A DNA stretch of 57,462 nt, counting the filler, from Bipalium vagum (Eukaryota), in the NCBI GenBank assembly GCA_037834085.1. It is 3 parts of 3 records of this genome, joined end to end, with 100 filler letters (N's around TTAATTAATTAA, not from the genome) between each part and the next. Parts side by side here need not be neighbours in the genome. Positions count along the whole stretch, not along the records: positions 39,544 to 57,462 come from JBBMKC010046556.1; 2 more parts are not named here. The stretch is one strand, 5' to 3'. Under the pieces are notes generated by a model. That model was not told where the DNA came from. It did not search any database and worked only from the letters and a program-made list of their open reading frames with translations. The first letter of the stretch is position 1, and each line of letters starts with the position of its first letter. A program made the translations under genes and the position numbers. Positions 40,543 to 57,462 of the stretch are shown here, one piece after another.

Positions 40543-41646
40543 TTAGTAAATCGTACCATTAGAAGGTTCAAAACGATAGCAATTAGTCCAGCTTACCTTG
40601 TAGGTTTTATCTGGTTTGGAAGGTTTCTGTTGTTTAACTGAAATGGTAACATTGTTTTTCTGTACAACGGAATCTATTGGAATAGAGTCTGAACCTTCGT
40701 GAGTTTTTTTATGTTTGGCCAAATGATCACTTCTCATGAAACGTTTATAACACAAAGGACAGACGAAGCGCTTTTCACCGGTATGGGTTCTCATGTGTCT
40801 TTGGAGCTCGTCTGATCTGGTGAATGATTTGGAACAGAGATGATACGTACAAACGAATGGACGATCATTATTGTGCCATCGGATATGGGCTTTTAAATGA
40901 CTGGTTTTTCCGTACGTTTTGTGACAAATATAACAGATGTGAACCTTTTTTGCACCGTTAAGATTGGTTCGAGAATTGAGACCTTGGTGACAGTTGGGAC
41001 ATGTACATTTTTGACATTTTCGTTGGCCTATTTGCGAAATACTGGTCTGATTTGAAGGAACGGACAATTTCGTTTGATTTGTCAGTAAGGCTGATATGTT
41101 CGGTTGTGGACTGTGACTTCTCATTATTTCAACGGGTGATGAGAAATCTTTACAACTCAATAAAGACGGAAGAGAATAGGGATAAGAAAAACAATTGATC
41201 GATCTGCGATAAAACGGTTCGACACGATCATCAACACCTTGGGTCGACAATGAATTCATCAATGGTATTTGGTTCTTGGAATCCAACGGTGGAATTTCAA
41301 TACAAGGTTTTCGGGCAATTGGTCTGATAGGGGTATTGTGACAGCCATTATGTTTTACCGTCGCCGTTCCAGTTGTTATCTGACAGGTACTGGTCAAATT
41401 TTGATGAACGAAAAACTTTTCCGTCGTTCTTTGCAGAGCTGTCATTTCTGGACTTTGCCAGAAATCATTGGAATTGACGAGAAATCTGGTCGAAACGTTC
41501 GACTGAGACGGCATATAACACAAATCAATCGATGGAGATATTGATCCTGAGATAAATTGTGAGAACTTATTACCGAAAAAGCTTGGAGAATTCGGCATGA
41601 CTTGCAGCCCAGACGGAATGTTGATAACAGCTGATCCGGAATTCAT
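40543..41646 (-). CDS. sp5: Sp5/buttonhead-type C2H2 zinc-finger transcription factor, 367 aa
   Basis: Btd box [11 protein letters not shown] and three Sp-type fingers ([42 protein letters not shown]). A splice acceptor TTTGTAG| lies just upstream (41650). Sp family membership is certain; the Sp5 subfamily call is inferred from the R/K-C-x-x-C-x-CPNC box and [11 protein letters not shown]. Confidence 0.9.
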
Positions 41647-41982
41647 TTTCTACAAAGGGAAAAAAGAAAAAAATTAATTGACAATTAAAACAAAACGTTT
41701 CTTTTTTCTTTTTCTTTTGTAAAACGAAGAACATTCAATGCCAAAGCGATGTGCAGTGGATATTATTTTTTTCAATAAAAAAAATCTGTAACAGACAAGT
41801 TATTTCAACGAATTTTTGTCGCTGACATTGTCAGAAATGTCCCTCTTTTTAATGTTGGGGATAAAAGAAAAATAGCTCTTCCATAACCCAGACTTTCGAT
41901 ATATTGTTTGCCAGAAAAATCAATGGCAAATTAAAAAAAATAAAAACCTATTATTAGTGATCACAATTCAAAGTCAACTCAC

Positions 41983-42235
41983 TTGGAAATCGGGTAATAA
42001 ATTGATCGGATCTGATTGATTGATTGATCGATTTAATTGTATCCAAAGCAAAAGTAAAGGAGAAAATAATCACGACGGCCCGTTAACGTAGAGAATAGGT
42101 TTCGATAAACATTGACAAGAATATTCTGCCGGACAACATGAAATAATAATACTGCAGAACAAGCTCTGTGATGGATAATTTATATATGGTGGCTATAAAT
42201 TTCAACAACTTTGTACATTTAAACGACCAATCATA
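41983..42235 (-). promoter_or_regulatory. Probable sp5 5'-UTR exon and core promoter
   Basis: Donor CAA|GTGAGT at 41982, TATATAAA (minus) at 42179-42186 and CCAAT at 42227-42231. No in-frame ATG lies in the exon. Confidence 0.6.
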
Positions 42236-42344
42236 ATCCGCTAAACGCAAGATGAGGCTTTATTATTATTATTATTATAATAATTATTTCAGGAACAGCT
42301 ATCGAAAAGTACAGCATGATTAACAAGCATTTGATTGCTGTATG

Positions 42345-42595
42345 GATAAACACAAACACAAACACCCACAATCACACACACACACATTAACAAACACACT
42401 CGTGCACATGAACATACAAACAATCAAGCGATCTCGCGACAAACATTTTACAGTTATTAAACAAACATATTCACACATGCACACACAGGCATGCACCGAT
42501 CAGAATTTTTTTCAGTTGAATTTAGTGCTTGGTATGTGTGCACAATGTATGCGTGATCGTTTGTGTGTATGCGAATGAGAGATAGAGAGAGATGA
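42345..42595. repeat. CA-rich / GA-rich low-complexity tract upstream of sp5
   Basis: Degenerate (CA)n followed by (GA)n. Confidence 0.7.
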
Positions 42596-42644
42596 TGCAA
42601 AAACGGTTTGAAACTATAAAATTTTCTAATCATAACTTTATCAT

Positions 42645-42860
42645 CCAGATCAAAGTAGGCGTACCGCTCTAGAGACATAAAAACCGGCTGCAGAGAGGCG
42701 GGACCGGCATCAAAGACCGATTGAAAGAGCGCGAGAGAGAGAGCGCGGGTTATTGTTTGTATGGCGGTATCTCGCTAACCAATTAAATCAGGTGGTTACG
42801 ATGGCGGCAACATCAAAGAAACGCTTTGATCTCTTGATATGCGCCGCCGATCTAATTACA
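42645..42860. promoter_or_regulatory. Candidate Wnt-response element: clustered TCF/LEF HMG sites, Helper sites and a GC box
   Basis: ATCAAAG at 42649, 42709 and 42812; CTTTGAT at 42824. TGGCGGT at 42762, TGGCGGC at 42802, GCCGCCG at 42843. GAGGCGGGAC at 42695. The whole cluster sits in a GC-rich island. Confidence 0.75.
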
Positions 42861-44731
42861 GGAGGTACACACTGGGCACACACAATTAATTGAAAAGTTT
42901 TTTTTTGTTTTTTTTTGGGTTCTTTTTTTTCTCGATGCTATAGTTTTTTTTATTTATTTGAAGACACTGGAGCTCGGTCGTTCTCAAAATCAGTGGTTTT
43001 CACCATATATTACCGTTTTAATCTGTGTCGACTAAAGATGGAAATGAGCGAATGGAATTTTGTATTTACATTAAATTTTATATTCACATTAAAACAAAAT
43101 ATGGAAATCGTACGGAAAGAAATATATTCTGATTTTACAAAATATGGACAAAAATACGGTTCTGTCGTCAAGTGAAACATTTCTGGTATTCAGAAATCGT
43201 TTAACAACGAAAAAAATACTTTTCTTGTCAAATAATAATAAAAATTAAAATTCATCAATAAATTAATATAAAAATAGAGCTCTGATTTCTGTGTTGTTGG
43301 TTTCTTGGTTTGTCAAATTATACCAAAAAAAAAATCAAGCTTAATTAAAATTAATTAATTAAATTAATTAATTCTTTCTAAATTCCGATTTCAAATAACG
43401 ATTTTTGCCTTTGATTAATGTTTCTGAAATTAATAATAAAAATATCAATAATATCAATAATAATAAAAATATTAATAATATCAATAATAAAAATAAAAAT
43501 AATAAAATATCAATAATATCAATAATAATAATAATAAAGATTGGGAAAATCTTTTCAAACATTTCTCCACAGTTTCTTTTCGTATGGCTTCTTCGTTAGC
43601 TTTTGTTGTTTGAATTCCCATTGTCATAAAATGGAATTTTGTCGTGATGATAAAAATTTGACATCGGTGATTTTTTTTTCTGCTTTTTCTGCCGTTCAGA
43701 TTTTTTAATTACAAAATAAATCGACATAATTTTATTAAATGAATGATGATTGCATATGAATTATTTTGTCCAGAATTTGTTTAAGTTTGCAATCGAGTCC
43801 GTGAAAGCATTCGTACTTAATTATCTGACATTAATGAAGATTATAAACAGCCTTTTCCATTTCCGACAGACGACAGTCAGATTAGAGCGTTGGTACAGAG
43901 AGTTGGGTTGAATAATTGTCATCAATCAATAATGTGTTATTCACATTGGCTACATTATTATTATTAATAATAATATTATTATTATTATAATGGGCGGTAC
44001 ACGCTTACCGATGTATGGACGCGTTTGATCGTTCCGACACTAGAACAAATACCAGATAGGTAGAGCGATTTGGAGATTGAATGCGAGTTCAATTGATTCG
44101 ATGTTGGCCTCATATGCCGGGTGGATGCGGTCCGACTTTCAACAATTGCGGTATTTTTTGTTTTACTCAATCTTGTCAGTGGTCTTTTTCAAGTTCTCTC
44201 GCTTCAAGTTCTCTTTGCTCGCTTGCTTGTTTCGTGTTCGATCTGAACAGGCCTGACATGGATTGGTGAAGGAGATTGGGTATTATAATTATTATTTATT
44301 ATTTTTTTCATTTTTATTTTTTTTATTATCATCAGAGATATTGGAAGAATAATTCGAGGAAAATTGTCCACACTTTTTTCAATTGTCTTTTTGGATTTTC
44401 CATTTTGATCTTATCCGAAATCACGAATAAATTTTATGCATCTGATTATATCTTGATTGACTTGCCATTTGAATTACAATACCATTTGGCTCGGTCATAT
44501 AAATTGTACGAAGAATGCAATACGGAAAATCGGCGAGAACAATTTTCACATGACGGAAAAATGTGAATAACATTAATTTTTCAGGAAAGTTTGTAATTTA
44601 ATTTATTTGTTTTAATTGAAAGAATATCATTTTGGTTGATATTGATTTTTATTTGAATTTGAACCAACCAAATGTTAAGAAAGAAAAAATGAAATAATAA
44701 TGATAATAACAAATAATAATAATAATAAAAA

Positions 44732-44732
<1 letters not shown>

Positions 44733-44776
<44 letters not shown>
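44733..44776. repeat. (AAT)n microsatellite
   Basis: AAT run. Confidence 0.9.
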
Positions 44777-45221
44777 CCTTTATTAATGACCAATAAGATT
44801 GAATCTTTTATCAAATTTTCCCCTAAGAATATGGAGGAACTATGTCACAGTTTCTAATAAATGTTTAGGTTGGTCTTTCATTGTTCTTTAACTGCATTAA
44901 ATGATTTTAATAAAAGATTCAAATTTTATTTGTTAAAGGTTAAAGTCTGCAAGTTAAATATTCGAAAGTAATTATTGAATTTGTAACTTAAAAGGTACGA
45001 TCAATAAAAATAAAAAAACAATTATTTAAAATATGTATTCAACATCTGAAACTGTTGGCCGGATAATTAGATTCGGAAAAATCAAAGACGGGCGCATCTT
45101 TGTCACGGAAAAGAATTTAAGTTGAAAGAAAGGTGTGTTATTCATAAAAGGAGGTTTTTCAAAAACAACAGCGCTTTTTAAAAATTCTGAAATATTCAAA
45201 ATATCCAACTGAAAAATAAAT

Positions 45222-46112
45222 ATAGGGTGTTCCATAAGAAGCTTTACTGTTTTGAATTCAGTTTGTTGCGGATAATGCATGACGATTTGCATTTAAAAGC
45301 CTATAAGATTAACTTAGTGCAACAGATTAAAGAATCAGAATCAATATTGCCGAAATTATTAAAATTGGTTATTAGATCGATCGCTTGGTGAAAAAGCATT
45401 TTGACCAATGAAGCTCACTATCGCTTGAGTGGAGCAGTAATCAACAAACAAATATGGGCCACAGCAACCATATGTTTTGATGGAGGAAGCATTACTTTCA
45501 CCAAAAATAACTGTATGATGTGAAATATGACCAAGAGATGGAATTGATTCGTACTTTTTTGAGTATGGTGTGAATAAGACAGTTAAAGTGAATGGAAAGC
45601 GATTTTGACACATGATCGAAACATTTATGCACCCCAATCTGATTGATTATAATGTTGCAAATAATTACTTTCAGCAGGATGGTGCCACACCCAATACAAA
45701 TAGTAAAGAAATCGCATTATTGCAAGAAAAATTTCCATCTCATCTAATCTCTCGTTTCGATGATTTTGATTGGCTTTCTAGATCTCGACTTAACGGGTTC
45801 GGACTATTTCTTATGGGGATATTTTAAAGATAAATTCTATGCGAATCATCCATCAACAATTACACAACTGAAACTTAACATTTCTGCAAAAATCGACCTG
45901 AGTTCAAAATGTTGTGAAGAATGTTATAAAGAGCCGAAAGCTGTAATCCTGCCAGAGGCGGTCATTTGAATGACATCATATTTTAATTGAAAATTTTTGT
46001 AATGTCTGTCTTTACATAAAAGTATAAATGAAACCACTTTGCTTTGTTAATTTCTTTCTACGGAAGAACAAGAACGAATGAAAGTAGTAAAGGTTCTTTT
46101 TGAACAACTAAT
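45222..46112 (+). mobile_element. Degenerate rosa/DD41D-like element with TIRs, same family as 3078-3626
   Basis: Ends TAGGGTGTTCCATAAGAAGCTTTACT and AGTAGTAAAGGTTCTTTTTGAACAACTA. Motifs YFQQDGATPN and DYFLWGYFKDKFY. Shares CTGCCAGAGGCGGTCATTT(G/T)AATGACATCATATTT with the copy at about 3505. Confidence 0.85.
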
Positions 46113-47399
46113 ATATAATATAAACACAAACAGTTAGTTATGATTTCCATGCTTCTAATTATCTCATAAAGGTTATTTTCCGAGACAAGAATTCCGAGTG
46201 GAAACATAACACAACACCAACTATTTATTCCATTAGGTTTTCCAACTGTTAATATAATATAAATAAATAAAATATTGGAAACATTTTCGATTATTTTATT
46301 TTTATGTTTATTTTGAGAAAATCAATCTCTTATTGATATTATCGAATTTTCTATGACCTTGAAAATTATAAAGCTAATTTATTGGGGAAAGATATTTTTC
46401 CAAAACAACCAAATTAAAGAATTTTTTGTTTATATCGATAACTTAATATATTATCGAGTATCCAACAGAATTGGAAACCACGAAAGGATAGATTACAGTA
46501 AATTGATCCAAAATACCGGTGCCATATAATACTTTCTTCATATTTTATCAAATTTTGATACCAGGACTCCAGCAAATTCCATTATGGAAAACATTGATCT
46601 GTTGAAAACCAGTTGACGATTTTATGACCCTGTCTACAGTAAAGTAATCATTAAGTCACAGTATCAAAACAGTATAAATGGCAAATATAAACAAATAATG
46701 TATTTAAATTAATTGAGATTTCGAGGATAGTTGATTTAAACAAATTAAAAATATCAGCTGAACGTATTTTCCCTCGTATTGGATATGCACGCAAAAATGG
46801 TAAAGTGATCCAGCTAATCAATGGGCACAGGCAAATTGACCAATGCGCTTTCCTCTCATGAATGGCACGAATTGGTAAAGGTTCCAAAGTAACGACAGCG
46901 GGGTGTCCTAAATAGGACATTTCCAATGAATATTGAGGAGGAGCTTCTGTTTCATAAGCTGTAGGGATTGTTTAAATATAGCGGTATCATACGTTGATTA
47001 TGTAATTCTGAAATTTTATACATTTTTAAAAAAATTATTGATTAAATATTTTACGTTGTTTTTCCATATTTTTCCAATGTTATTATTATTATTATTTATT
47101 ATTTATTATTATTATCATTATTATTGTCACAAAAGTTATGAAAGATATATAATTTTCTTTTTGAGGTTGAATCTAACGTTTTTCATTATTGAACAAAATC
47201 ATGTATCACTGGTAACAGATAAATATATTGTTACCCTACATTTTTGCTTATACACCGCAGCTTATATATACGAGAATTATTGAATTCAGGGGAAACTCAC
47301 AACACGGCATTTGCATGAGTTCGACTTATCTATGTAAATTTGTAATTTATAAAAACTACGGAACAAAAAAATTTATTGACGTTTTGGTCCAATGCAAAT

Positions 47400-47830
47400 A
47401 TTTTCTATCCAATACTTGATGATATCAGACCCAATTCATTTTTTTTCGTTTCCTGTGACCAGAACTTCTTTGGGAAAACACTTTTAGACATATTTTTTCA
47501 ATTAAATATCAGTCAAGGTTTGTATTTTTCAACATCGGCTGTAACTCAAAATACAACTGTAGTTAGCTTGACATCAGATGATCCTTTCCTCTCAACTGTG
47601 TAACCACTGGGCATATTGACACTGATGCACACCTCATCAATATTGCCGATATGGTCAAAATCGACCCATATATATAGCATTTTTGATAAGAAGATTAAAT
47701 ACTGTCATTTTTTCTTCCCAATCCTTCAGAAATTTCTGTTCGTTAGATCTGACGATTCTTACCGATAAATTATGTTTTCCATGAAAATATGAACCAACAG
47801 TTTTCGTTGACTTGAATAATATTTTCGAGT
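47400..47830 (-). mobile_element. pogo/Tigger transposase fragment
   Basis: IGNIDE...NMPSGYTVERKGSSDVKLTTVVF*VTADVEKYKP matches the pogo DDE N-terminal motifs. Confidence 0.7.
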
Positions 47831-50800
47831 TTTTTTGTATTCATTGATATTATGAAATTTGAAAATGTTATTGATTTAACAATATTCAAACGAATTTGAT
47901 TAAAATGGTATGTATTAATTTTAATAAGTTTCTAAAAGTACATGTTACAGCATATGCATGAGTTCGGCTTCGGGTAGGTCAGACTTTTTGGAGATCAATA
48001 GAACAACTTCCACGATCGCTTTAGTAGGTTCATTTAAATATTTATAACTTTAAGGGAAAGACTTTCTAATAACCCTTTTTATTAAATGATTTTAGAACTT
48101 AAAAGAGTGTCAAGATTCCAGTTCTCATGGAAGTCATTGTTGTCTGGTTTAATAATGATTTATTCTGTTAGACACATTTCGGTCCTGGGGAACTGCGATT
48201 TTGCGTGTCTTAAAAGAGCTTGTAACGAAGTTACTGTTATATCCTAGGTCGATATAATTAAGGCATACCATTCTTTTTAAAATCACAAATCAAAGGTTGC
48301 ATCGCTCTGTAATTGAGTTTTCATTTTTTATTCTAACCTTTTCCAAGTAACATCCACGACATCTTCCTGATCTTTAATTTCAATATCCTGGAACGAGTTC
48401 CACAATTTAATTTTAAAAGAGATTGTTTATGTAAAACATTTGAATTGATGTGACCCGTTTTATTATGATACAAGGAACACTTAATTATAAAAAAAGCGAT
48501 ACATGCACACTAATCAAAGTATTTTCCTTCGTTTGATATTAGCTTTTCCTATTTGACTGGCATTTTAGGAGGAATTTTTAACAGAAAAACGATTCGTCAA
48601 TCGAAATGATTCATTCATTGACCTAATTTTCTATTTCTTCATAATTTCTGAAGTGCTGTTTCGAAATCCCGTGTGCCATTGATCGAAACAATGATTATTT
48701 TTCATTTATAATTTTTTAATTAATATTTTTACGTTTTTAAATATTTTTTCTTCAGAGAAGACCTCAAGAAACATTTCATAATAACTGATAACTGATTGGG
48801 AAAGCAACTTCTTCAATTCATTAACAAGTGACTTATATTATTCCAGATATGTGAATATTCTTTTTCCTCTGCAACTCTCCCGTCTCAAAATATCAACATT
48901 TGCTTCATTATGCTTACTCTACGATTTACCACTTCAATGATATGAAGCGTCACGCTTCCTCCCTCAATATTGTACTGAAACCCACAATAATTCCGTCATA
49001 CGAAGAAAGTTTGACTTTCAGTTGACCTCAGAGTTGGAATGAGTCTGTATCCTAGACTCATGTTAAGTACCCTAGAAATGTTTCTGCTAAACATATGTCA
49101 ACTGACCTCTAAATAGATGCAGATTAAAAATATCTGTTTTAACATTTGTACCATAACACATATACGGTCAGACGTGGCTGGCAATTAGGTATTATTATTA
49201 TTATTATTATTAATATTATTATTCTAATACATTTATTGAGAGAACTGACTTTTTGGTGATCTGATAAAACTACAAAGTGTATGACGGTTGGAGCTCACGC
49301 ATTGATAACAATCTGTAGTATGCGGTTCAGCATCTCAAACCTCCTTTAAGAACCTAGTGATACTACAAGTACAAAGTAATACATAATAAATATTATCTTT
49401 AAATATAATTAATTCTTCTACGAATATTCTCTGAAATCTGTCCAACAAAATATTATTAATAAAAATTATTATTATATAAAAAAATATGCGACTTTATACA
49501 ATTTTTTGAGTCATAAATTAAATAATATAATTGATAATAATATCAAATTTTAAAAATAAAAATAAATTAAAAGCAAATTAATAAATATTACAAATAAGTT
49601 AGTTAAGTTAACATTTAAAATAAAAGTAATAATTAAAAATAAAGGAATTATATTAAATCTTTATAATAAAAATAAAATAATAACTAAATTAAAAAATAAT
49701 TAAATAAACAATACTAAAATATTAATTAATATTATATAATTAAATTATAATAAAATTAAAATATAATAATTAGATAATTAAATAAAAAATAATAATCAAA
49801 CAAAAACAAATTATTAATTAATTAATTAAATTGTAATAATAATAAATTAAAAATAATAAAATAATAATAGTATTTAACTAAAAATAATAATTAATTAAAT
49901 AAATAATTAGTAATTATATTAAATATATCAACGCATTAAAAATAAAGATAAAAATTAAATTTAAATAATAATAAATAATTATTAAAATCGTAATAATTAA
50001 ATTAAAATAACAAAAATAATAATAAATATTAATTAAATTATAATATTAATAAATAGATATAATAATTAAATGAAAATATTTTATATTATATTTATTAAAA
50101 ATAAAATTTTAAGCTAAATAATTTGGATAAATTATAAATAATAATGATTAAACTAGAATAATAATAAAAATATTTTAAAAAAATATTATTTTAGTTGGAT
50201 ATTGTTTTGTCAGGCCCATAAGCAAAGTGCCACCTTCAAAATTATTTGTAGTAATAAATAAAAATATAATAAATTGCAAAAAATATAAATAAAAAAATTG
50301 ATAACTTTTCTACGCAAATTCTCATTCTGAAGTCAGTCCGCATTGAAGAGCGCGCGCAAAATGTTAATTACAGACAAAAATGTTAATAAAATATAATAAT
50401 AAAAAAAACAGAATGAAAAAATAACTGATCATAATGGGTAGATTAAACCTTTTGAAACCATTTCATCTGATACACTTACTGAGCCAGCTTTAGCAATAGA
50501 CCGTTTAACTTTAGACCGCTCTTTAAAAGAAGTACGTGAACAAATACGTTAAGTATCAAAATCAAATGTTATTCTTACAATGATCAATAGACAATGATCA
50601 ACAATGAAATGGCGATGTTATATTATTTTATTATGAACTAAATATATTATATATATTGAAAAAATAATAATAATTATTGAAGCAATTATAAAGTCAACTT
50701 TATCATGATTAAATTAAGCAGAACCAAAAACCCTCTGAAGAATATATTGATTGAAAAATTGATTATGATCTTCTCACAATTTGTTGGTATAGAGTTTTTA

Positions 50801-51247
50801 ATTTTTTTTGAAAAAACTATTTATTTTTTATTTTAAATTCTGATTATATGTGGAAATTATTTCAGAGTTCCTTTTTGATTTGGTTTTTTATTCATATAAA
50901 AATACGATTTCTACAATTTTTAGTATTATTTATTTAAAAATTTGTGGATTGTATTATTTTATTTAATTATTATGTTTAACATTTAATTATATATTATAAA
51001 TATTTTTTGGTAATTATTATTGTCATTATTATTATTATTATTTAATAATTAATTTAAATCATTTTATATACTAATGCAATAATCTCTAAATATAAAAATA
51101 ATATTTCTTCAATATTAAATTTTTTTAGAAATAGTTAAATTAATAATGCACAAAAAATTTTAAATAAAACATTTAAAAATCACTTAAAAATATTTCAACG
51201 AATTATTATTTGTTACATAAGTTTTCGTGGTTTTGAATTATATATAC

Positions 51248-51850
51248 TGGGTGATTCATACGTTCAGGAGGAAATATATGTATGAGTATTACTTTTTATA
51301 CCTGAAAATTAATAGATTTAATTTCAAATCGTTTTGTTTAATGTAATCGATTTTTATTTAAGTTATATGGATTTTCAGATTCGTATAATATTAGTGGAAT
51401 TATATTTAAGAAACAATCAATTAGCAGCTGCTAAGCTTTGTGCCTACAAAATTCTACACAAATTGCCAGATTCTAGTGTAATAACTGTTACTAGATTAAT
51501 CAAAAGATGTAAAGAAACGACATCGTTTTGATAGGCCTATTTTTGAAAAAAAATCTTGGAGTTAATTTTGAAGATAAACTCAAATGAAAACAGAGAAACA
51601 ATGAATTGGGTATGGCTAGCTCGGTTTATGTGAAACACAGGGTTTACCATAATTTTACATGACGAAACTTAGACGAGCTGAACATTCGAATAGCGGAATT
51701 GATAGCAAATATCAATCAAGATTAATTGAGACGATCAGTTCATAATCTACCAACAAGATTGGAATGCGATATGCAGAATAAAGGTGGCCTAACTAAACAT
51801 TAGTACTTTAATTTGATGTTATGTACATGTTATTCATTAATGCTGTTCCA
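51248..51850 (+). mobile_element. Degenerate rosa-like Tc1/mariner remnant
   Basis: TA-CTGGGTGATTC end, an HTH-like ORF at 51334..51531 and the C-terminal LDELNIRIAE...RLECDMQNKGGLTKH*. Confidence 0.65.
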
Positions 51851-51889
51851 AATATTTTTTATTAGGTTTAAATTTATTTACTTTGTGAT

Positions 51890-52200
51890 GTATAGGTAAC
51901 CATGCATTTGTAGGCAATAAAAATCTTCAATTACTAAAAATAATGAAAATTCAATCGATAATGTCATAAGGACCATTTGCAAATATCCACCAGTTTATTG
52001 AACCCTTTATTCAAGAAATTTTTAGATCAACTTAGCAAAAAATAAATAAACCACTTTTTAGGTACCTTTCCTCAGAATTAATAGAGGAAAAAATAGACAG
52101 CGAGCGAAAAAAGATAAAAATCTGTTGGTGCAAGGCCTGGAGAATACGGAGTGTCGAATAACAATTCAACCAATCTTAATTTAGGAGTTTGGAGACCGTC
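51890..52200 (-). mobile_element. mariner 3' fragment
   Basis: TPYSPGLAPTDFYLF on the minus strand at about 52110-52155. Confidence 0.65.
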
Positions 52201-55200
52201 ATTGGATTGGTGTTAATCCTCTTATGCAAATGTCTGTAAATTTGACAATTGTCATCTTCAACGAATGCAATCAATTAGTCATCATCGATATTGAGTGTCT
52301 GACCTGTATAAAGTGTTCCTTAAAAATTTTATTTTGTATTTTCGAATTTCTCTTATTAATATTTTGCAGTAATCCAAATCCAAACATGTTTTTCAAACAC
52401 ATCATATATTACCTGGACTCCCTCTGTTCTCGAGTGGTGGAAATGGTGTTTTGATTAATCTGACTCTGAAATTCCAAGCTGTCAAATTTAATTGGAATGA
52501 AATGACTTAAGAAACTGTTCTGTTCCTCTTTAGCAGAGCAGAAAAAGATGTTTCAAATAAATATATTCGGTATTAAAAAGTTTGATACAGTAAAACAAAA
52601 CCAAGAAATAAACGAATCATGAAAATTAATGTTACAACATAATAATGAATATTTCAAGAAAAATGGAAAAGAACAAGAAATGAAAAAATAAAATCAATAT
52701 TAGTTTGAAACAATTTTGACTTTGAAAATAAATTAATTGGAGGTCTAATTTCATTATGAATGTCCACACAGAAAGGGAAGAAAAAAATGCCCACAAAACC
52801 AGTAGGTAGGAACAAGCCAAAATCTTCTCCGAAGGATCAGAAATATCAAAGACTGGATTAGGCGAAAGAATTATTTATCCAGATATTTATTAAAACAAAA
52901 ATCAGTTATTCTTCGCCAAATAAAAACGCCATTTTAGGGTCAGAGTCAAGAGATGGTGGAAAAAAGATGTTCAACGTGACACTGATAATTTAGGCAAAAG
53001 AAAGAATTTGGTGATCATGATGAGGTCTTATAGTGCAATTCAGTCTTGCCAAAACAACCCTGAACAATTTTAGTGGCCATGTTATTCTAATGATTTTTAT
53101 CAAAGATATCAGCACTTGAGGTGAAGTCATTCTTGATTGAACAATTTCGGCTTTTTCGGTAACCGCTAATTTTTTTTATAAATAATGTTGTAATTAAATG
53201 TTTTTAATCTTCAAGATCTTCAAAACTTTGATCATTGAAAGACTTTATCTGAACATCTGTTACTAGACATTTTCAAGTCGTTTTGAGGGGTGACCCAATC
53301 CATACTTCACGTATTTTCTTTCGTTTTTTAATGATTTCTTATATTTTTATTTTAGATTTTTTTCTTTTTTTTAACAAGAACAAAAAGATCTTTTGTTACA
53401 GTAATTGTTTTTAGTAGTACACTAAGCCCACCCTGACCATTGTTTTCGGTACACCTGGGCTGGTTTCAGACCCATGGCCTACAAAGACGTCTGTTGGCGT
53501 TCAGACCCACTTTTGAATTTTTTTTCATTATTATGTGCAAGATTAGATTAAAACAAATTATTATTTTCTTTATTATTCAGAAAGCCTTTGTTTGTAAAAG
53601 GTTGAAAATATAAAGAAATAAAATATAAATAAAATATGAATAAAAGATAAATAAATTAAATATAAATAATAAATTAAAGATAAATCATTTAAATAAAAAT
53701 ATATAAAATAAAAAAAAATTAATTAATTAATTATAAATAAAAAATAAATCATTTAAATATAAATAAATAACCAGAAAAAAACTGAAAAAATAAAAATAAT
53801 ATAAATTAAAAATAAATAAATTTTACAAATATAAAAAAGAAACATTAAATAAATATTTATGTAAATATAATATTTATTTTTTCAAGGCATTTACAATTCC
53901 TCTTTAAGCGTCTTCTCTTTTCTTTTATATGGTTAATGACTCTTCGAAGACATATTCAAGCAACTAATTCAATCGATGATCTTTGTTAAAACTGTTAATA
54001 GTAATATCATGACCAAGGTCTTTATGGCTGACTCCAAAAACTAAGTTGATTTCTTCAATTATCCAGTCCCACTTTAAAATCAACAAAAGATAAATCCAAA
54101 AACGTGTTTATTTATATCCTTATTCATACCAAAGTTGTCACGAAATATCTCAACAATATTTTCAGTGCGAATATTTTAATATTAACGAAACCCCAAAATT
54201 GTATACCTCACATCGTAATTAAATAAATTAATTTTTTAGTCTAAAGCTTTATTAAATCGATAAACAACACAACAGCAATAATCAAGTAATAATATCTCAA
54301 GTTTCAAAACAGAGTTAATATCCCTAATGCTCCTGACTAACCTCAAAACTAACTGATCCTTCGTATATACCACAGTGTTCTTAAGAATATCTCCATACGA
54401 CACACCATTTAAATCAATTAAAATGTTAGCCCAGGTAAAAGAAATAGAAGTGAGATGAAATCAAAATGAAATAAAGGTGAATGAAATATATTAAAAATAA
54501 TTGTCTAATAATTTACTAATGAAATAATTCACGTTAACTTTGGTCGATTTCGGTTTGAGCCCCACGGAATTTCACCGATTCTACCAACCTTCAGAGTTCG
54601 TGACAGACCCGAACAAAATCCCGGTCAGAAGGAGGTGTAATACCAACTGAACAATGGTTAAAAGTTTTCACCACAATCTTTGAATTCGACAAGTATGATC
54701 TTGGACTTATTATTTTTCTGAGAGCTGATTTTAACAGGTAGCTATAGTCATTAAGGCCATTATATGTCAGAACGGAGAGCTGATTGCTTTTCTGTGTTTC
54801 TGGTTATTCAATTTAACAAAAAAATCAAATATTTTGTCCCATCTGAGAAGTAGTTATCTCTGAAAATCCGATGCTTGTGAAAATGGAAAGTAATGAACAC
54901 CAGGTAAACAGTGTTCAGGAAATCTAAACAAACGATAATCGGTAGAAACCAAGTACATTCCAGTCACAATAATTTGCTCCGGGTAACCAGGACAAATATT
55001 ATAGTGATGGTAGACAATGATCTTAGCATTTGCATAATTTGGATCCTTTCCGTTTGTTTATTACGTTTTATGGAGGTACATGTTCTAATTAATATTTTGG
55101 ACAGTTTGCAACACATTATAAGTAATAGAATACTTTATAAAATTCACATATAACTAAATATTATGAATTGTTCCCTTTTGTCGTCCATACTGTTAATTGA

Positions 55201-55311
55201 ATTTTAGCAGAATTTATGATGTTGTTCCGGAAATAGTGTCGTTTTTGTCCCTGTCATTTATTACACATTATTTAAAAAATTTTTCTTTTGTTTTAAAGCG
55301 TTTATCAAATA

Positions 55312-56430
55312 TTAGGTTGTCCAGTATGAAATTGCTGATTTTTCATATTAATTTTCAAATTAAAGTTAATCACAAACGTTAACAATAAATTGTTTGTTTA
55401 TATTTACCAAATTAAAATGTAACTTTCAAACTTTAATATAAATATAAAAGTAAGCATATTAATTTAAAGTAAGTTTTTGTTATCGTTCTTTACCAGGCAT
55501 GGTTGATCAAAATATTCGAGTATGCATATTATACGAGTTCAAACTTAACCACAATGCATCAGAAGCAACTCGAAACATTAATGTTGCATGGGGTGAAGGT
55601 AGTATAAGCGAAAGAACACAGATATGGTTCAAAAAATTTCGAGACGGGGCCTAAGTCTCCAAAAACAAGACCGCGGAAGATCCAAGTCCCCCTTAAATGA
55701 AGCCCAATTGAAGTCGGCTGTCGAAGAAAATACCAGAACAAATGTGAGAGAACTTGCTCAAGTTCTCAATGTGTTCAAATCAACAATTTCCATCCATCTA
55801 AAAGGGATTGGTAAGATTAAGAAGCTTGATTCATGGATTACCCATGATTTAACAGAAAATCAACAAAAATATCGATTGCAAATCTGTTTGTCATTAATAA
55901 ATCGGAACCAAATTGGTCCCTTTTTGTCTCGTATTATTACATGCGATGAAAAGTGGATTGTGTACAACAATCGTAGACGATCAGCGCAATGGTTAAATGC
56001 TGATGAGAAGCCGAAAACCATGTCTAAACCAAGGTTTCACTCCAAGAAGACTATGATAACTGTGTGGTGGTCTGAGGGTGCCTTAATACATTACAACTTC
56101 TTGAAATCATGTGAAACAATTACCACACAGTCATACTGTCAAGAAATTGAGGCTATGCACACAAAGCTGATTAAAAAAACAGGTCTTGTAAACCAAAAGG
56201 GCCGATCTTGCTTCAGGATAATGCAAAACCACATGTTTCTAAAGTAACCGTACAAAAATTACATGACTTACAGTACGACGTTTTGCCTCACCCAGCTTAT
56301 TCCCCAGATCTGTCACCTACAGATTATCACCTGTTCCAGAATATGGATGCATTTCATAATCATAGAACCTGCTATGAAAAAGAAATAGTTATGCGTAATT
56401 TTCTTATACGGATATTAAATGGGCCATAAA
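55312..56430 (+). mobile_element. mariner (DD34D) element, near-complete transposase pseudogene
   Basis: TIR TA-TTAGGTTGTCCAGTATGAAATT. ATG at 55499 (MVDQNIRVCILYEFKLNHNASEATRNI), then WITHDL, TCDEKW, QDNAKPH and HPAYSPDLSPTDYHLF. Two frameshifts; 3' end lost. Confidence 0.92.
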
Positions 56431-57405
56431 GACGCTCACACAAATCTTTAACCAACAATACACGCAGAGAAGTAACAACAGACAAATGATACAGTATTGG
56501 TTTAAAAAATTACTCGATAGAAATAAGACCTGCGAAGATCATGAGTGAAAGACTATCCCCGAAAAGGACAAATAAAAGGTTTTGTCTCGAACTGGTGTTC
56601 CATTTATAAAAGTTCGTGAGCTTGCAGAAGAAGTTGATGACTTTATTGAAGCAACTTGTGAGAAATTAGTAAATCAAGAAAGTTGAACAAGTAGGTTCCT
56701 CATCAATTGTACAAAAACAAAAAATATCGTTTATTTGAAGCTGCGTCTTCGCTCAATTTACAAAATAATAGTGATCCATTTCTCAACCGCAATGTGAAGT
56801 ACGATGAAAAGTTGATTATATATGACTACCGAGGTCGCTCAACTCAATGGTTAGACCATGGTCAAGCTGCACAACATTGCCATAAACCAAATTTACATTA
56901 AAAGAAGATGATGATGATGGTTTGTGGTCTACAGCCGATCTCATTCGTTACAGTTTTCATTACTTGGACGAAACCATTACGACAGACAAATATTGTTATG
57001 ATACCAACGATATGCGCTTGAAACTTTGACAACATTGGTTATTGTTAGTCAAAGGAAAAGACCGATTCTTCTCTATGATAACATTTATTCGCATGTGGCA
57101 CAATCGACTTCACATATTTCAAACTAGTTAGGATACGAAATCTCATTCATTGTACTTGTAAGACCGTTTATCCATTGATCACCAGGGAAACTTCTTGAAG
57201 AGAAAATATTTTAGAAATCCATATGATGCCATAAAAAACCTTCAACGATTTCGTCGATTGCAGAACTCAAGAATTTTACTCAACGGCTATAAATAAACTT
57301 CGGTTTTATTGGTTAATTTCGATTAATTAAAATTATTCGATTTTATTAAAACGATGCATCCAAAGTTCAATGTTAAAAAGCGACATTACTTTTTGAACAA
57401 CCCAA
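56430..57405 (+). mobile_element. Second, more degenerate mariner copy with 3' TIR
   Basis: YDEKLIIYD...QWLD...HKPNLH. Terminal CATTACTTTTTGAACAACCCAA-TA. Confidence 0.8.
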
Positions 57406-57462
57406 TAATACTCTACACAGATGTCTTGTGAAAATTATTGTGTGGGCATGAATTTAATAATA

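Follow-up and report, generated by a model that had tools for sequence, protein, structure and literature searches.

A candidate TCF Wnt-response element with paired HMG and Helper sites upstream of sp5 in the planarian Bipalium vagum

Introduction

Regeneration of the body axis in planarians is a leading model for positional control by Wnt signaling, and planarian sp5 is a posterior gene that depends on beta-catenin-1 (PMC6821139). In Schmidtea mediterranea, sp5 expression drops after wnt1 RNA interference (RNAi), and the gene is among the few downregulated ones with Homer Tcf3/Tcf4 motifs in a promoter element (PMC9849279). For S. mediterranea sp5, Ivankovic et al. (2024) show the promoter and, about 3 kb upstream, an enhancer, without motif analysis; by their account, no more than two planarian enhancers have been characterized even in part. 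Which bases near a planarian sp5 gene, then, could read the Wnt signal, and through which parts of a TCF protein? We address this question in a stretch of 57,462 nucleotides from the genome of Bipalium vagum (GCA_037834085.1), referred to here as the window. One 17.9-kb piece of the window (positions 39,544 to 57,462; JBBMKC010046556.1) holds an sp5 gene and, upstream of it, an island at 42645-42860. The initial annotation had proposed that this island is a Wnt-response element in which TCF sites bound by the HMG box are paired with GC-rich Helper motifs, the sites read by a second TCF domain, the C-clamp.

The same annotation had drawn on Sp5 as a Wnt/TCF target in other animals, and the published record agrees. 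Human SP5 is a textbook C-clamp-dependent target; its promoter has functional HMG-Helper pairs in the configurations AK7, RW1, and FF1, which are read by the C-clamp, and C-clamp-mutant TCF1E binds this promoter weakly (PMC4154663, PMC4267635). In Hydra, five TCF sites lie in the Sp5 promoter, which responds to beta-catenin and is autoregulated through GC boxes (PMC6338789).

Results

A cluster of optimal TCF sites

The island holds four core TCF sites within about 185 bp, all of them where the initial annotation had placed them. Read on the plus strand, ATCAAAG lies at 42649, 42709, and 42812, and CTTTGAT at 42824. The corresponding HMG/TCF sites are as follows.

42648..42655, minus strand: site 1, CTTTGATC on the minus strand; about -489 to -495 from the inferred transcription start site (TSS); no adjacent Helper
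42708..42715, minus strand: site 2, CTTTGATG on the minus strand, directly followed by GCCGG and then CCCGCC
42811..42818, minus strand: site 3, CTTTGATG followed by TT
42824..42831, plus strand: site 4, CTTTGATC; inverted relative to site 3, with a 5-bp spacer

On its own strand, each of the four reads as the 8-mer CTTTGATS, a form found in only one of the seven CTTTGAT sites outside the island. The island thus contains an HMG-site cluster of the kind by which a Wnt cis-regulatory module (W-CRM) is recognized, with four CTTTGATS matches to CTTTGWWS in 216 bp. The 17.9-kb piece has 11 CTTTGAT sites on both strands together, four of them in these 185 bp. In dinucleotide shuffles of the whole piece, at least four sites per 200 bp were reached in 0 of 1000. 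Local shuffles of the island alone (GC 0.44-0.50), which retain its raised G+C, gave a mean of 0.03-0.13 sites, and none of 20,000 reached four; two HMG-then-Helper pairs of the same orientation were likewise obtained in 0 of 20,000. The Helper consensus GCCGCCR occurs only twice in the piece, both times inside the island. The cluster of HMG and Helper motifs is real, statistically exceptional, and far above chance.

Could such a cluster still be functionless, or belong to another transcript on the plus strand? A Poisson estimate (seven outside sites in 17.7 kb and an assumed genome of about 1 Gb) gives tens of chance four-site clusters genome-wide. However, the same rough estimate puts such a cluster within 1 kb of a known Wnt target at about 1e-5, and with two perfect Helpers in the correct orientation as well, chance becomes negligible. 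Furthermore, no coding or RNA gene was found on the plus strand near the island. We regard this explanation as highly improbable.

Internal duplication was ruled out as the origin of the HMG sites, which are not repeat copies. The island was also considered as an RNA gene and rejected, as Rfam gave only a chance-level small nucleolar RNA match (E = 0.94) and a tRNA scan gave none.

Two perfect Helpers flank an inverted HMG pair

Four GC-rich motifs accompany the HMG sites.

42802..42808, minus strand: Helper 1, GCCGCCA (TGGCGGC on the plus strand), a perfect GCCGCCR; directly after the 11-bp HMG site 3 (FF0)
42843..42849, plus strand: Helper 2, GCCGCCG, a perfect GCCGCCR; 12 bp past the CTTTGAT of site 4 and 9 bp past the 11-bp site (FF9)
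42762..42768, minus strand: orphan Helper-like motif, ACCGCCA (TGGCGGT on the plus strand), which fits RCCGCC; 43-46 bp from the nearest HMG sites
42695..42703, plus strand: GC-box-like GAGGCGGGA, 7/9 versus GGGGCGGGG; 5 bp from HMG site 2

The orphan motif is the third Helper-like sequence of the initial annotation, found at its expected place. The FF and AK configurations were called from an 11-bp HMG site and a 7-bp Helper, following Archbold et al. 2014 (PMC4154663) in our own reading of the nomenclature. Site 3 with Helper 1 reads CTTTGAT-GTT and then immediately GCCGCCA, i.e., FF0. The whole module runs TGGCGGC-aac-ATCAAAG-aaacg-CTTTGAT-ctcttgatatgc-GCCGCCG; in other words, two HMG-Helper units stand back to back, in the order Helper-HMG-5 bp-HMG-Helper. 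This is the sequence originally described, an inverted pair 5 bp apart with Helpers mirrored on its flanks. The description of the module as near-symmetric does not hold, because the HMG-Helper spacers differ (3 versus 12 bp); it is mirror-like, not symmetric.

Helpers (GCCGCCR or RCCGCC) are expected about 0-12 bp from the HMG site, and here they lie at 0 and 9 bp. Both units are also among the orientations and spacings known to function, AK2-9 and FF0-11, of which AK6 and FF0 are best. In Drosophila, FF0 is one of the two configurations best bound by TCF/Pangolin, and human TCF1E prefers the FF0-11 range, which includes FF9 (PMC4154663).

An inverted pair of HMG sites also raises the question of whether another HMG-box factor, e.g., a SOX dimer on ATCAAAG-N5-CTTTGAT, binds here, so that the island would not be a Wnt/TCF target at all. 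SoxE proteins dimerize on inverted repeats with short spacers, and WWCAAWG is compatible with the SOX and TCF consensus alike. Two nearby copies of CATACAAACAAT, which is SOX- or FOX-like, fit this idea as well. Nevertheless, all four sites are the TCF-optimal CTTTGATS and not the SOX-preferred AACAAT/ACAAT, adjacent Helper motifs are a TCF-specific feature, and sp5 is already known to be a beta-catenin target, its S. mediterranea promoter having a TCF motif. A SOX-type reading of the island is therefore very unlikely.

The gene downstream is an Sp5 ortholog

The gene is an Sp5 ortholog, as had been claimed. Its protein has three C2H2 fingers (Pfam zf-C2H2) at the C-terminal end and the Btd box CTCPNC, which fits the CxCPNC pattern of the Sp5/Btd group. 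The top matches are four planarian Sp5 proteins (67-71% identity), including those of D. japonica and S. mediterranea (P0004), and the named matches that follow them are mostly called Sp5. In a quick tree, the window protein groups with planarian Sp5s (support 95) and with trematode orthologs (97), with Thermobia Sp5/Btd next to them; a weak deeper split (77) separates this half from Sp1-4 and Sp8/9. An N-terminal Sp box was not seen in the window Sp5. Its fingers carry the helices KTSHLKAH, RSDELQRH, and RSDHLAKH, and for these canonical helices the Sp1 recognition code predicts GGG-GCG-GGG.

The published S. mediterranea sp5 primers (PMC9849279 supplement) have at least 4 mismatches per 20 bases against the window, and the peptides that they encode are all present in P0004. 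Thus, P0004 is the S. mediterranea Sp5, and the species behind the window is a different and fairly distant triclad.

The gene lies on the minus strand, with an Sp-type open reading frame (ORF) at 40543-41646; consequently, "upstream" means higher window coordinates. The mechanically called ORF of 367 residues runs into an intron. With the exons translated separately, the model is as follows, exons and introns being on the minus strand.

42227-42231: inverted CCAAT box, preceding exon 1
42179..42186, minus strand: TATA box TATATAAA, 26 nt before the inferred TSS
41983..42160, minus strand: putative exon 1, 5'-untranslated region (UTR) only; starts at GTTCTGCA, 26 nt after the TATA box; donor CCAA/GTGAGT
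41982-41650, minus strand: intron 1
40597..41649, minus strand: exon 2, with ATG at 41646, 350 codons, Btd box CTCPNC, and three C2H2 fingers
40596-40450, minus strand: intron 2
40327..40449, minus strand: exon 3, a 40-residue C-terminal tail ending in ...EDIDIESI, then stop

Exon 2 is bounded by the acceptor TTTGTAG, ending at 41650, and by the donor AAG/GTAAGC past 40597. The tail encoded by exon 3 is conserved and common to the planarian Sp5 proteins P0001, P0002, and P0004. At the DNA level, exon 3 is 83% identical to the related planarian sp5 transcript L001 and the remaining coding sequence 73%. A conserved 3'-UTR was considered for the 83%-identity block and rejected, as this block is the third exon, coding for the conserved tail. 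The predicted Sp5 has about 390 residues in three exons, close to P0001 (389), D. japonica Sp5 (393), and P0004 (387).

Transcription probably starts at GTTCTGCA (around 42160), which matches 7 of 8 bases of the 5' end of L001. The island lies 459-674 bp from the TATA box, close to the 460-670 bp first estimated, and, relative to the putative TSS, the cluster occupies about -490 to -690. No gene is nearer to the island than sp5. The DNA farther upstream holds only transposon remnants: frameshifted mariner-type transposase remnants lie at 55624-56429 and 56707-56901 (Pfam Transposase_1, E = 7.5e-22), so the DNA upstream of sp5 is transposon-littered intergenic sequence. ORFs at 45359-45969 look transposase-like by eye, with no Pfam match.

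Several other motifs were observed around the promoter and the island. A 23-nt inverted repeat (42413-42435 / 42741-42763; 78% complementary, arms 305 nt apart) brackets HMG sites 1 and 2, and both arms contain CATACAAACAAT, a 12-mer resembling forkhead or SOX sites (TGTTTGT); a FOXG motif is listed for the regulatory elements of S. mediterranea sp5 (PMC9849279). Homeodomain-type sites flank the TCF module: CAATTAA at 42781-42787, TAATTA at 42853-42858, and AATTAATT at 42885-42892. Elements of wnt1-dependent genes are reported to be enriched in homeobox motifs. In 42770-42900, TAAT is no denser than in the rest of this AT-rich piece; hence, these sites may be chance occurrences. Between the island and the TATA box lies a core-promoter-type palindrome, TCTCGCGA (42432-42441), adjoined by a low-complexity stretch of the ACACAAAC type (42340-42490). 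A weaker HMG-type site of the form WWCAAAG, TACAAAG on the minus strand, is found at 42209-42215, about 25 bp upstream of the TATA box.

Flatworm TCFs carry a C-clamp

It has been stated that all invertebrate TCFs have a C-clamp except those of planarians and other flatworms (PMC5996498). The initial annotation had proposed to check the TCFs for this domain. We did so in three steps. A metagenome scan for the coding pattern of KKPLNAFM gave 119 TCF loci; a few of them are GC-rich with vertebrate-type TCF exons (e.g., L033 and L035) and may represent vertebrate, possibly human, contamination; these entered only the bulk motif scan. All transcript-type TCFs among the 119 loci have a C-clamp; one locus (L114) is from a bdelloid rotifer, and no flatworm TCF was found among them. 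A profile from the HMG box to the C-clamp (A3), run against 1.84 billion representatives, gave 370 proteins with an E of 1e-30 or better. An exact-sequence look-up of the long-protein subgroup then supplied protein names.

One of these proteins, P0392, is S. mediterranea TCF-2 (965 residues; HMG box at 398-466). Its C-clamp is complete at 570-597 (KKCRARF...WCKPCRRKKKC), with four of four cysteines and all invariant columns of alignment A4. The generalization in PMC5996498 is thus wrong for this paralog, and planarians do not lack a canonical C-clamp TCF. The domain is also present in nine neodermatan TCF clusters from eight genera of flukes, tapeworms, and one monogenean. Among trematodes, it was found in Schistosoma mansoni "pangolin," Dicrocoelium, Clonorchis, Paragonimus, and Opisthorchis, and among other flatworms in Taenia (T. 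solium "pangolin"), Mesocestoides, and the monogenean Cichlidogyrus; a Heterobilharzia TCF was named in the same subgroup. The flatworm TCFs with a canonical C-clamp include P0338, P0361, P0390, P0378, and P0340. The linker between HMG box and C-clamp is about 100 residues in S. mediterranea TCF-2 and 34-310 in the parasites, versus 23-25 in the fly- and vertebrate-type representatives. Such a long linker could loosen the spacing rules.

Helpers or GC boxes

The GC-rich motifs of a Wnt-response element at sp5 could also be bound by Sp5 or by other Sp/KLF proteins, or be idle, rather than read by a C-clamp. In Hydra and mouse, Sp5 (motif GGGxGGG) occupies the promoter of its own gene, and it also interacts with TCF (PMC6338789); both Sp5/8-TCF cooperation and Sp5 autoregulation are known in these animals. 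Within the island, GAGGCGGGA is a reasonable GC box close to an HMG site, and it is a candidate either for an Sp/KLF site (Sp5 autoregulation) or for a weak Helper (CCCGCC on the minus strand). The recognition predicted from the Sp5 finger helices and the neural, not posterior, role known for TCF-2 point the same way. On the other hand, the two Helpers beside the inverted pair fit the 7-bp consensus perfectly, as against a GC-box match of 5-6/9 versus GGGGCGGGG without a GGGCGG or GGGxGGG core, and only 42695-42703 qualifies as a GC-box candidate. Moreover, both Helpers have the same orientation to their own HMG sites (FF0 and FF9), which is predicted by the Helper model and not by a GC-box model, and planarians have a C-clamp-bearing TCF. 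Accordingly, we consider it rather unlikely that the GC-rich motifs are Sp/KLF sites or idle sequence.

Related sequences

Of the related sp5 sequences, L001 and L002 are mRNAs without promoter sequence. L001 has an optimal TCF site, CCTTTGATC, at positions 18-26, within about 20 nt of its 5' end, and none is present at the matching place in the window. A third sequence, L003 (a Logan contig of 2548 nt), retains sp5 intron 2, and the protein called from it (P0003) ends with ...DKTYKV inside this intron; the contig therefore represents genomic or unspliced DNA from a different planarian and is not an mRNA. A search with the N-terminal 149 residues of the window Sp5 gave no genomic fragments of close relatives. 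P0004 has no contig match on record, and the window Sp5 protein itself is likewise without a record.

Clusters of TCF sites were also sought in 10 kb on each side of Sp5-like genes in Calicophoron, Paragonimus, Mesocestoides, Penaeus, Battus, and Rotaria. None with at least 3 sites per 250 bp was found in the roughly 152 kb around these six genes. Single HMG-Helper pairs were seen only in Penaeus and Rotaria; that of the bdelloid Rotaria (L128:9033-9049) is one CTTTGAT-N4-ACCGCC pair about 960 bp upstream of the start codon.

Discussion

We consider it very likely, judging from motif content and gene context, that the island at 42645-42860 is a TCF Wnt-response element of planarian sp5. A bipartite reading of its HMG and Helper sites by a C-clamp TCF is fairly likely. 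The full model, a Wnt/beta-catenin-responsive module of sp5 whose Helpers are read by a TCF-2-type C-clamp, appears likely to us. In this model, TCFs would occupy all four CTTTGATS sites by way of the HMG box. Where sites 3 and 4 form the inverted pair, a TCF-2-type protein would in addition touch the flanking GCCGCCR Helpers with its C-clamp, and this contact would raise affinity and specificity. Where beta-catenin-1 is high, i.e., in the posterior, the bound TCFs would recruit beta-catenin and turn sp5 on; without beta-catenin-1, they would repress the gene or stay silent. The GC-box-like site beside HMG site 2 may contribute Sp5 autoregulation. From the motifs, the gene, and the planarian C-clamp, we infer TCF occupancy, Wnt dependence in the window species, and the C-clamp as reader of the Helpers.

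Overall, the interpretation first offered is partly borne out, and each element of it that sequence analysis could address agreed with it. Several points weigh against this model. The C-clamp is documented in S. mediterranea rather than in the window species; of the C-clamp/Helper grammar that the initial annotation implied for flatworms, the C-clamp TCF and the FF0 and FF9 Helpers were borne out, with the C-clamp seen in a different planarian. The published role of TCF-2 concerns photoreceptors and the central nervous system. Given a linker of about 100 residues versus 23-25, the fly spacing rules may not transfer. HMG sites 1 and 2 have no perfect Helpers. L003, at 69% coding identity, spans 527 bp upstream of the ATG, and no non-coding alignment to the window was obtained. 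Finally, the trematode sp5 orthologs have no cluster within 10 kb. However, the C-clamp-bearing arthropod and rotifer controls are equally blank; therefore, the missing clusters in the trematode orthologs say little.

The beta-catenin dependence of planarian sp5, the TCF motif at the S. mediterranea gene, and the human Helper target have already been published. The island is thus a known kind of element and not a new mechanism. The initial annotation had held that this grammar was undescribed in flatworms at the sequence level; in the literature searched, no paper connects Helper sites or the C-clamp with planarians (Schmidtea), in agreement with that claim, although the S. mediterranea sp5 promoter was already on record as having a TCF motif. 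The literature searched contains no base-level description of a planarian Wnt-response element; the island is of interest as the first such candidate in a flatworm and as a parallel to human SP5. As a compact and sharply defined candidate of 200 bp, it yields explicit mutation predictions for four HMG sites and two Helpers, and it could be used as a Wnt reporter or to try out planarian transgenesis. The analysis also corrects a point in the literature, since flatworm TCFs, S. mediterranea TCF-2 included, carry a C-clamp. Because they do, bipartite searches for HMG plus Helper sites should improve Wnt-target prediction in flatworm genomes, including those of parasites. Furthermore, as the same gene is under Helper-dependent control in human and apparently also in a planarian, the age of this cis-regulatory grammar can be tested directly. 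It is conceivable, though doubtful at present, that Sp5 activation through C-clamp and Helper is ancestral to bilaterians and kept from planarians to humans, with the long flatworm tether relaxing the spacing and allowing Helper-HMG-HMG-Helper pairs.

How does the island compare with known systems? With the Hydra Sp5 promoter it shares a cluster of TCF sites upstream of Sp5; the Hydra sites are spread over about 3 kb, and Helpers were not examined there. Drosophila W-CRMs such as nkd-IntE and nkd-UpE, bound by TCF/Pangolin, have the same SCTTTGWWSWW and GCCGCCR motifs in close pairs, with FF0 among the two optimal configurations. They differ in belonging to other genes in another phylum, and the activity of fly FF pairs falls sharply with spacing, so that FF9 would be suboptimal there. 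The promoter element of S. mediterranea sp5 (Pascual-Carreras et al. 2023) belongs to an orthologous gene and also has a TCF motif. That element is defined by accessible-chromatin assay (ATAC) and chromatin immunoprecipitation (ChIP), and it is the expression of the gene that drops after wnt1 and beta-catenin-1 RNAi; the element was published only as a list entry and a browser view, without sequence, number of sites, or Helper analysis. The two species are different, with Sp5 proteins 67% identical.

In contrast to the human SP5 promoter, the putative planarian element has no sequence alignable with it and arranges its pairs as FF0 and FF9 back to back around an inverted HMG pair, for a C-clamp linker of about 100 residues. 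The likeness is one of grammar, not of homology. As in the human promoter, a target of TCF1E/TCF4E, several CTTTGWWS sites and HMG-Helper pairs lie in a promoter-proximal position at the orthologous gene.

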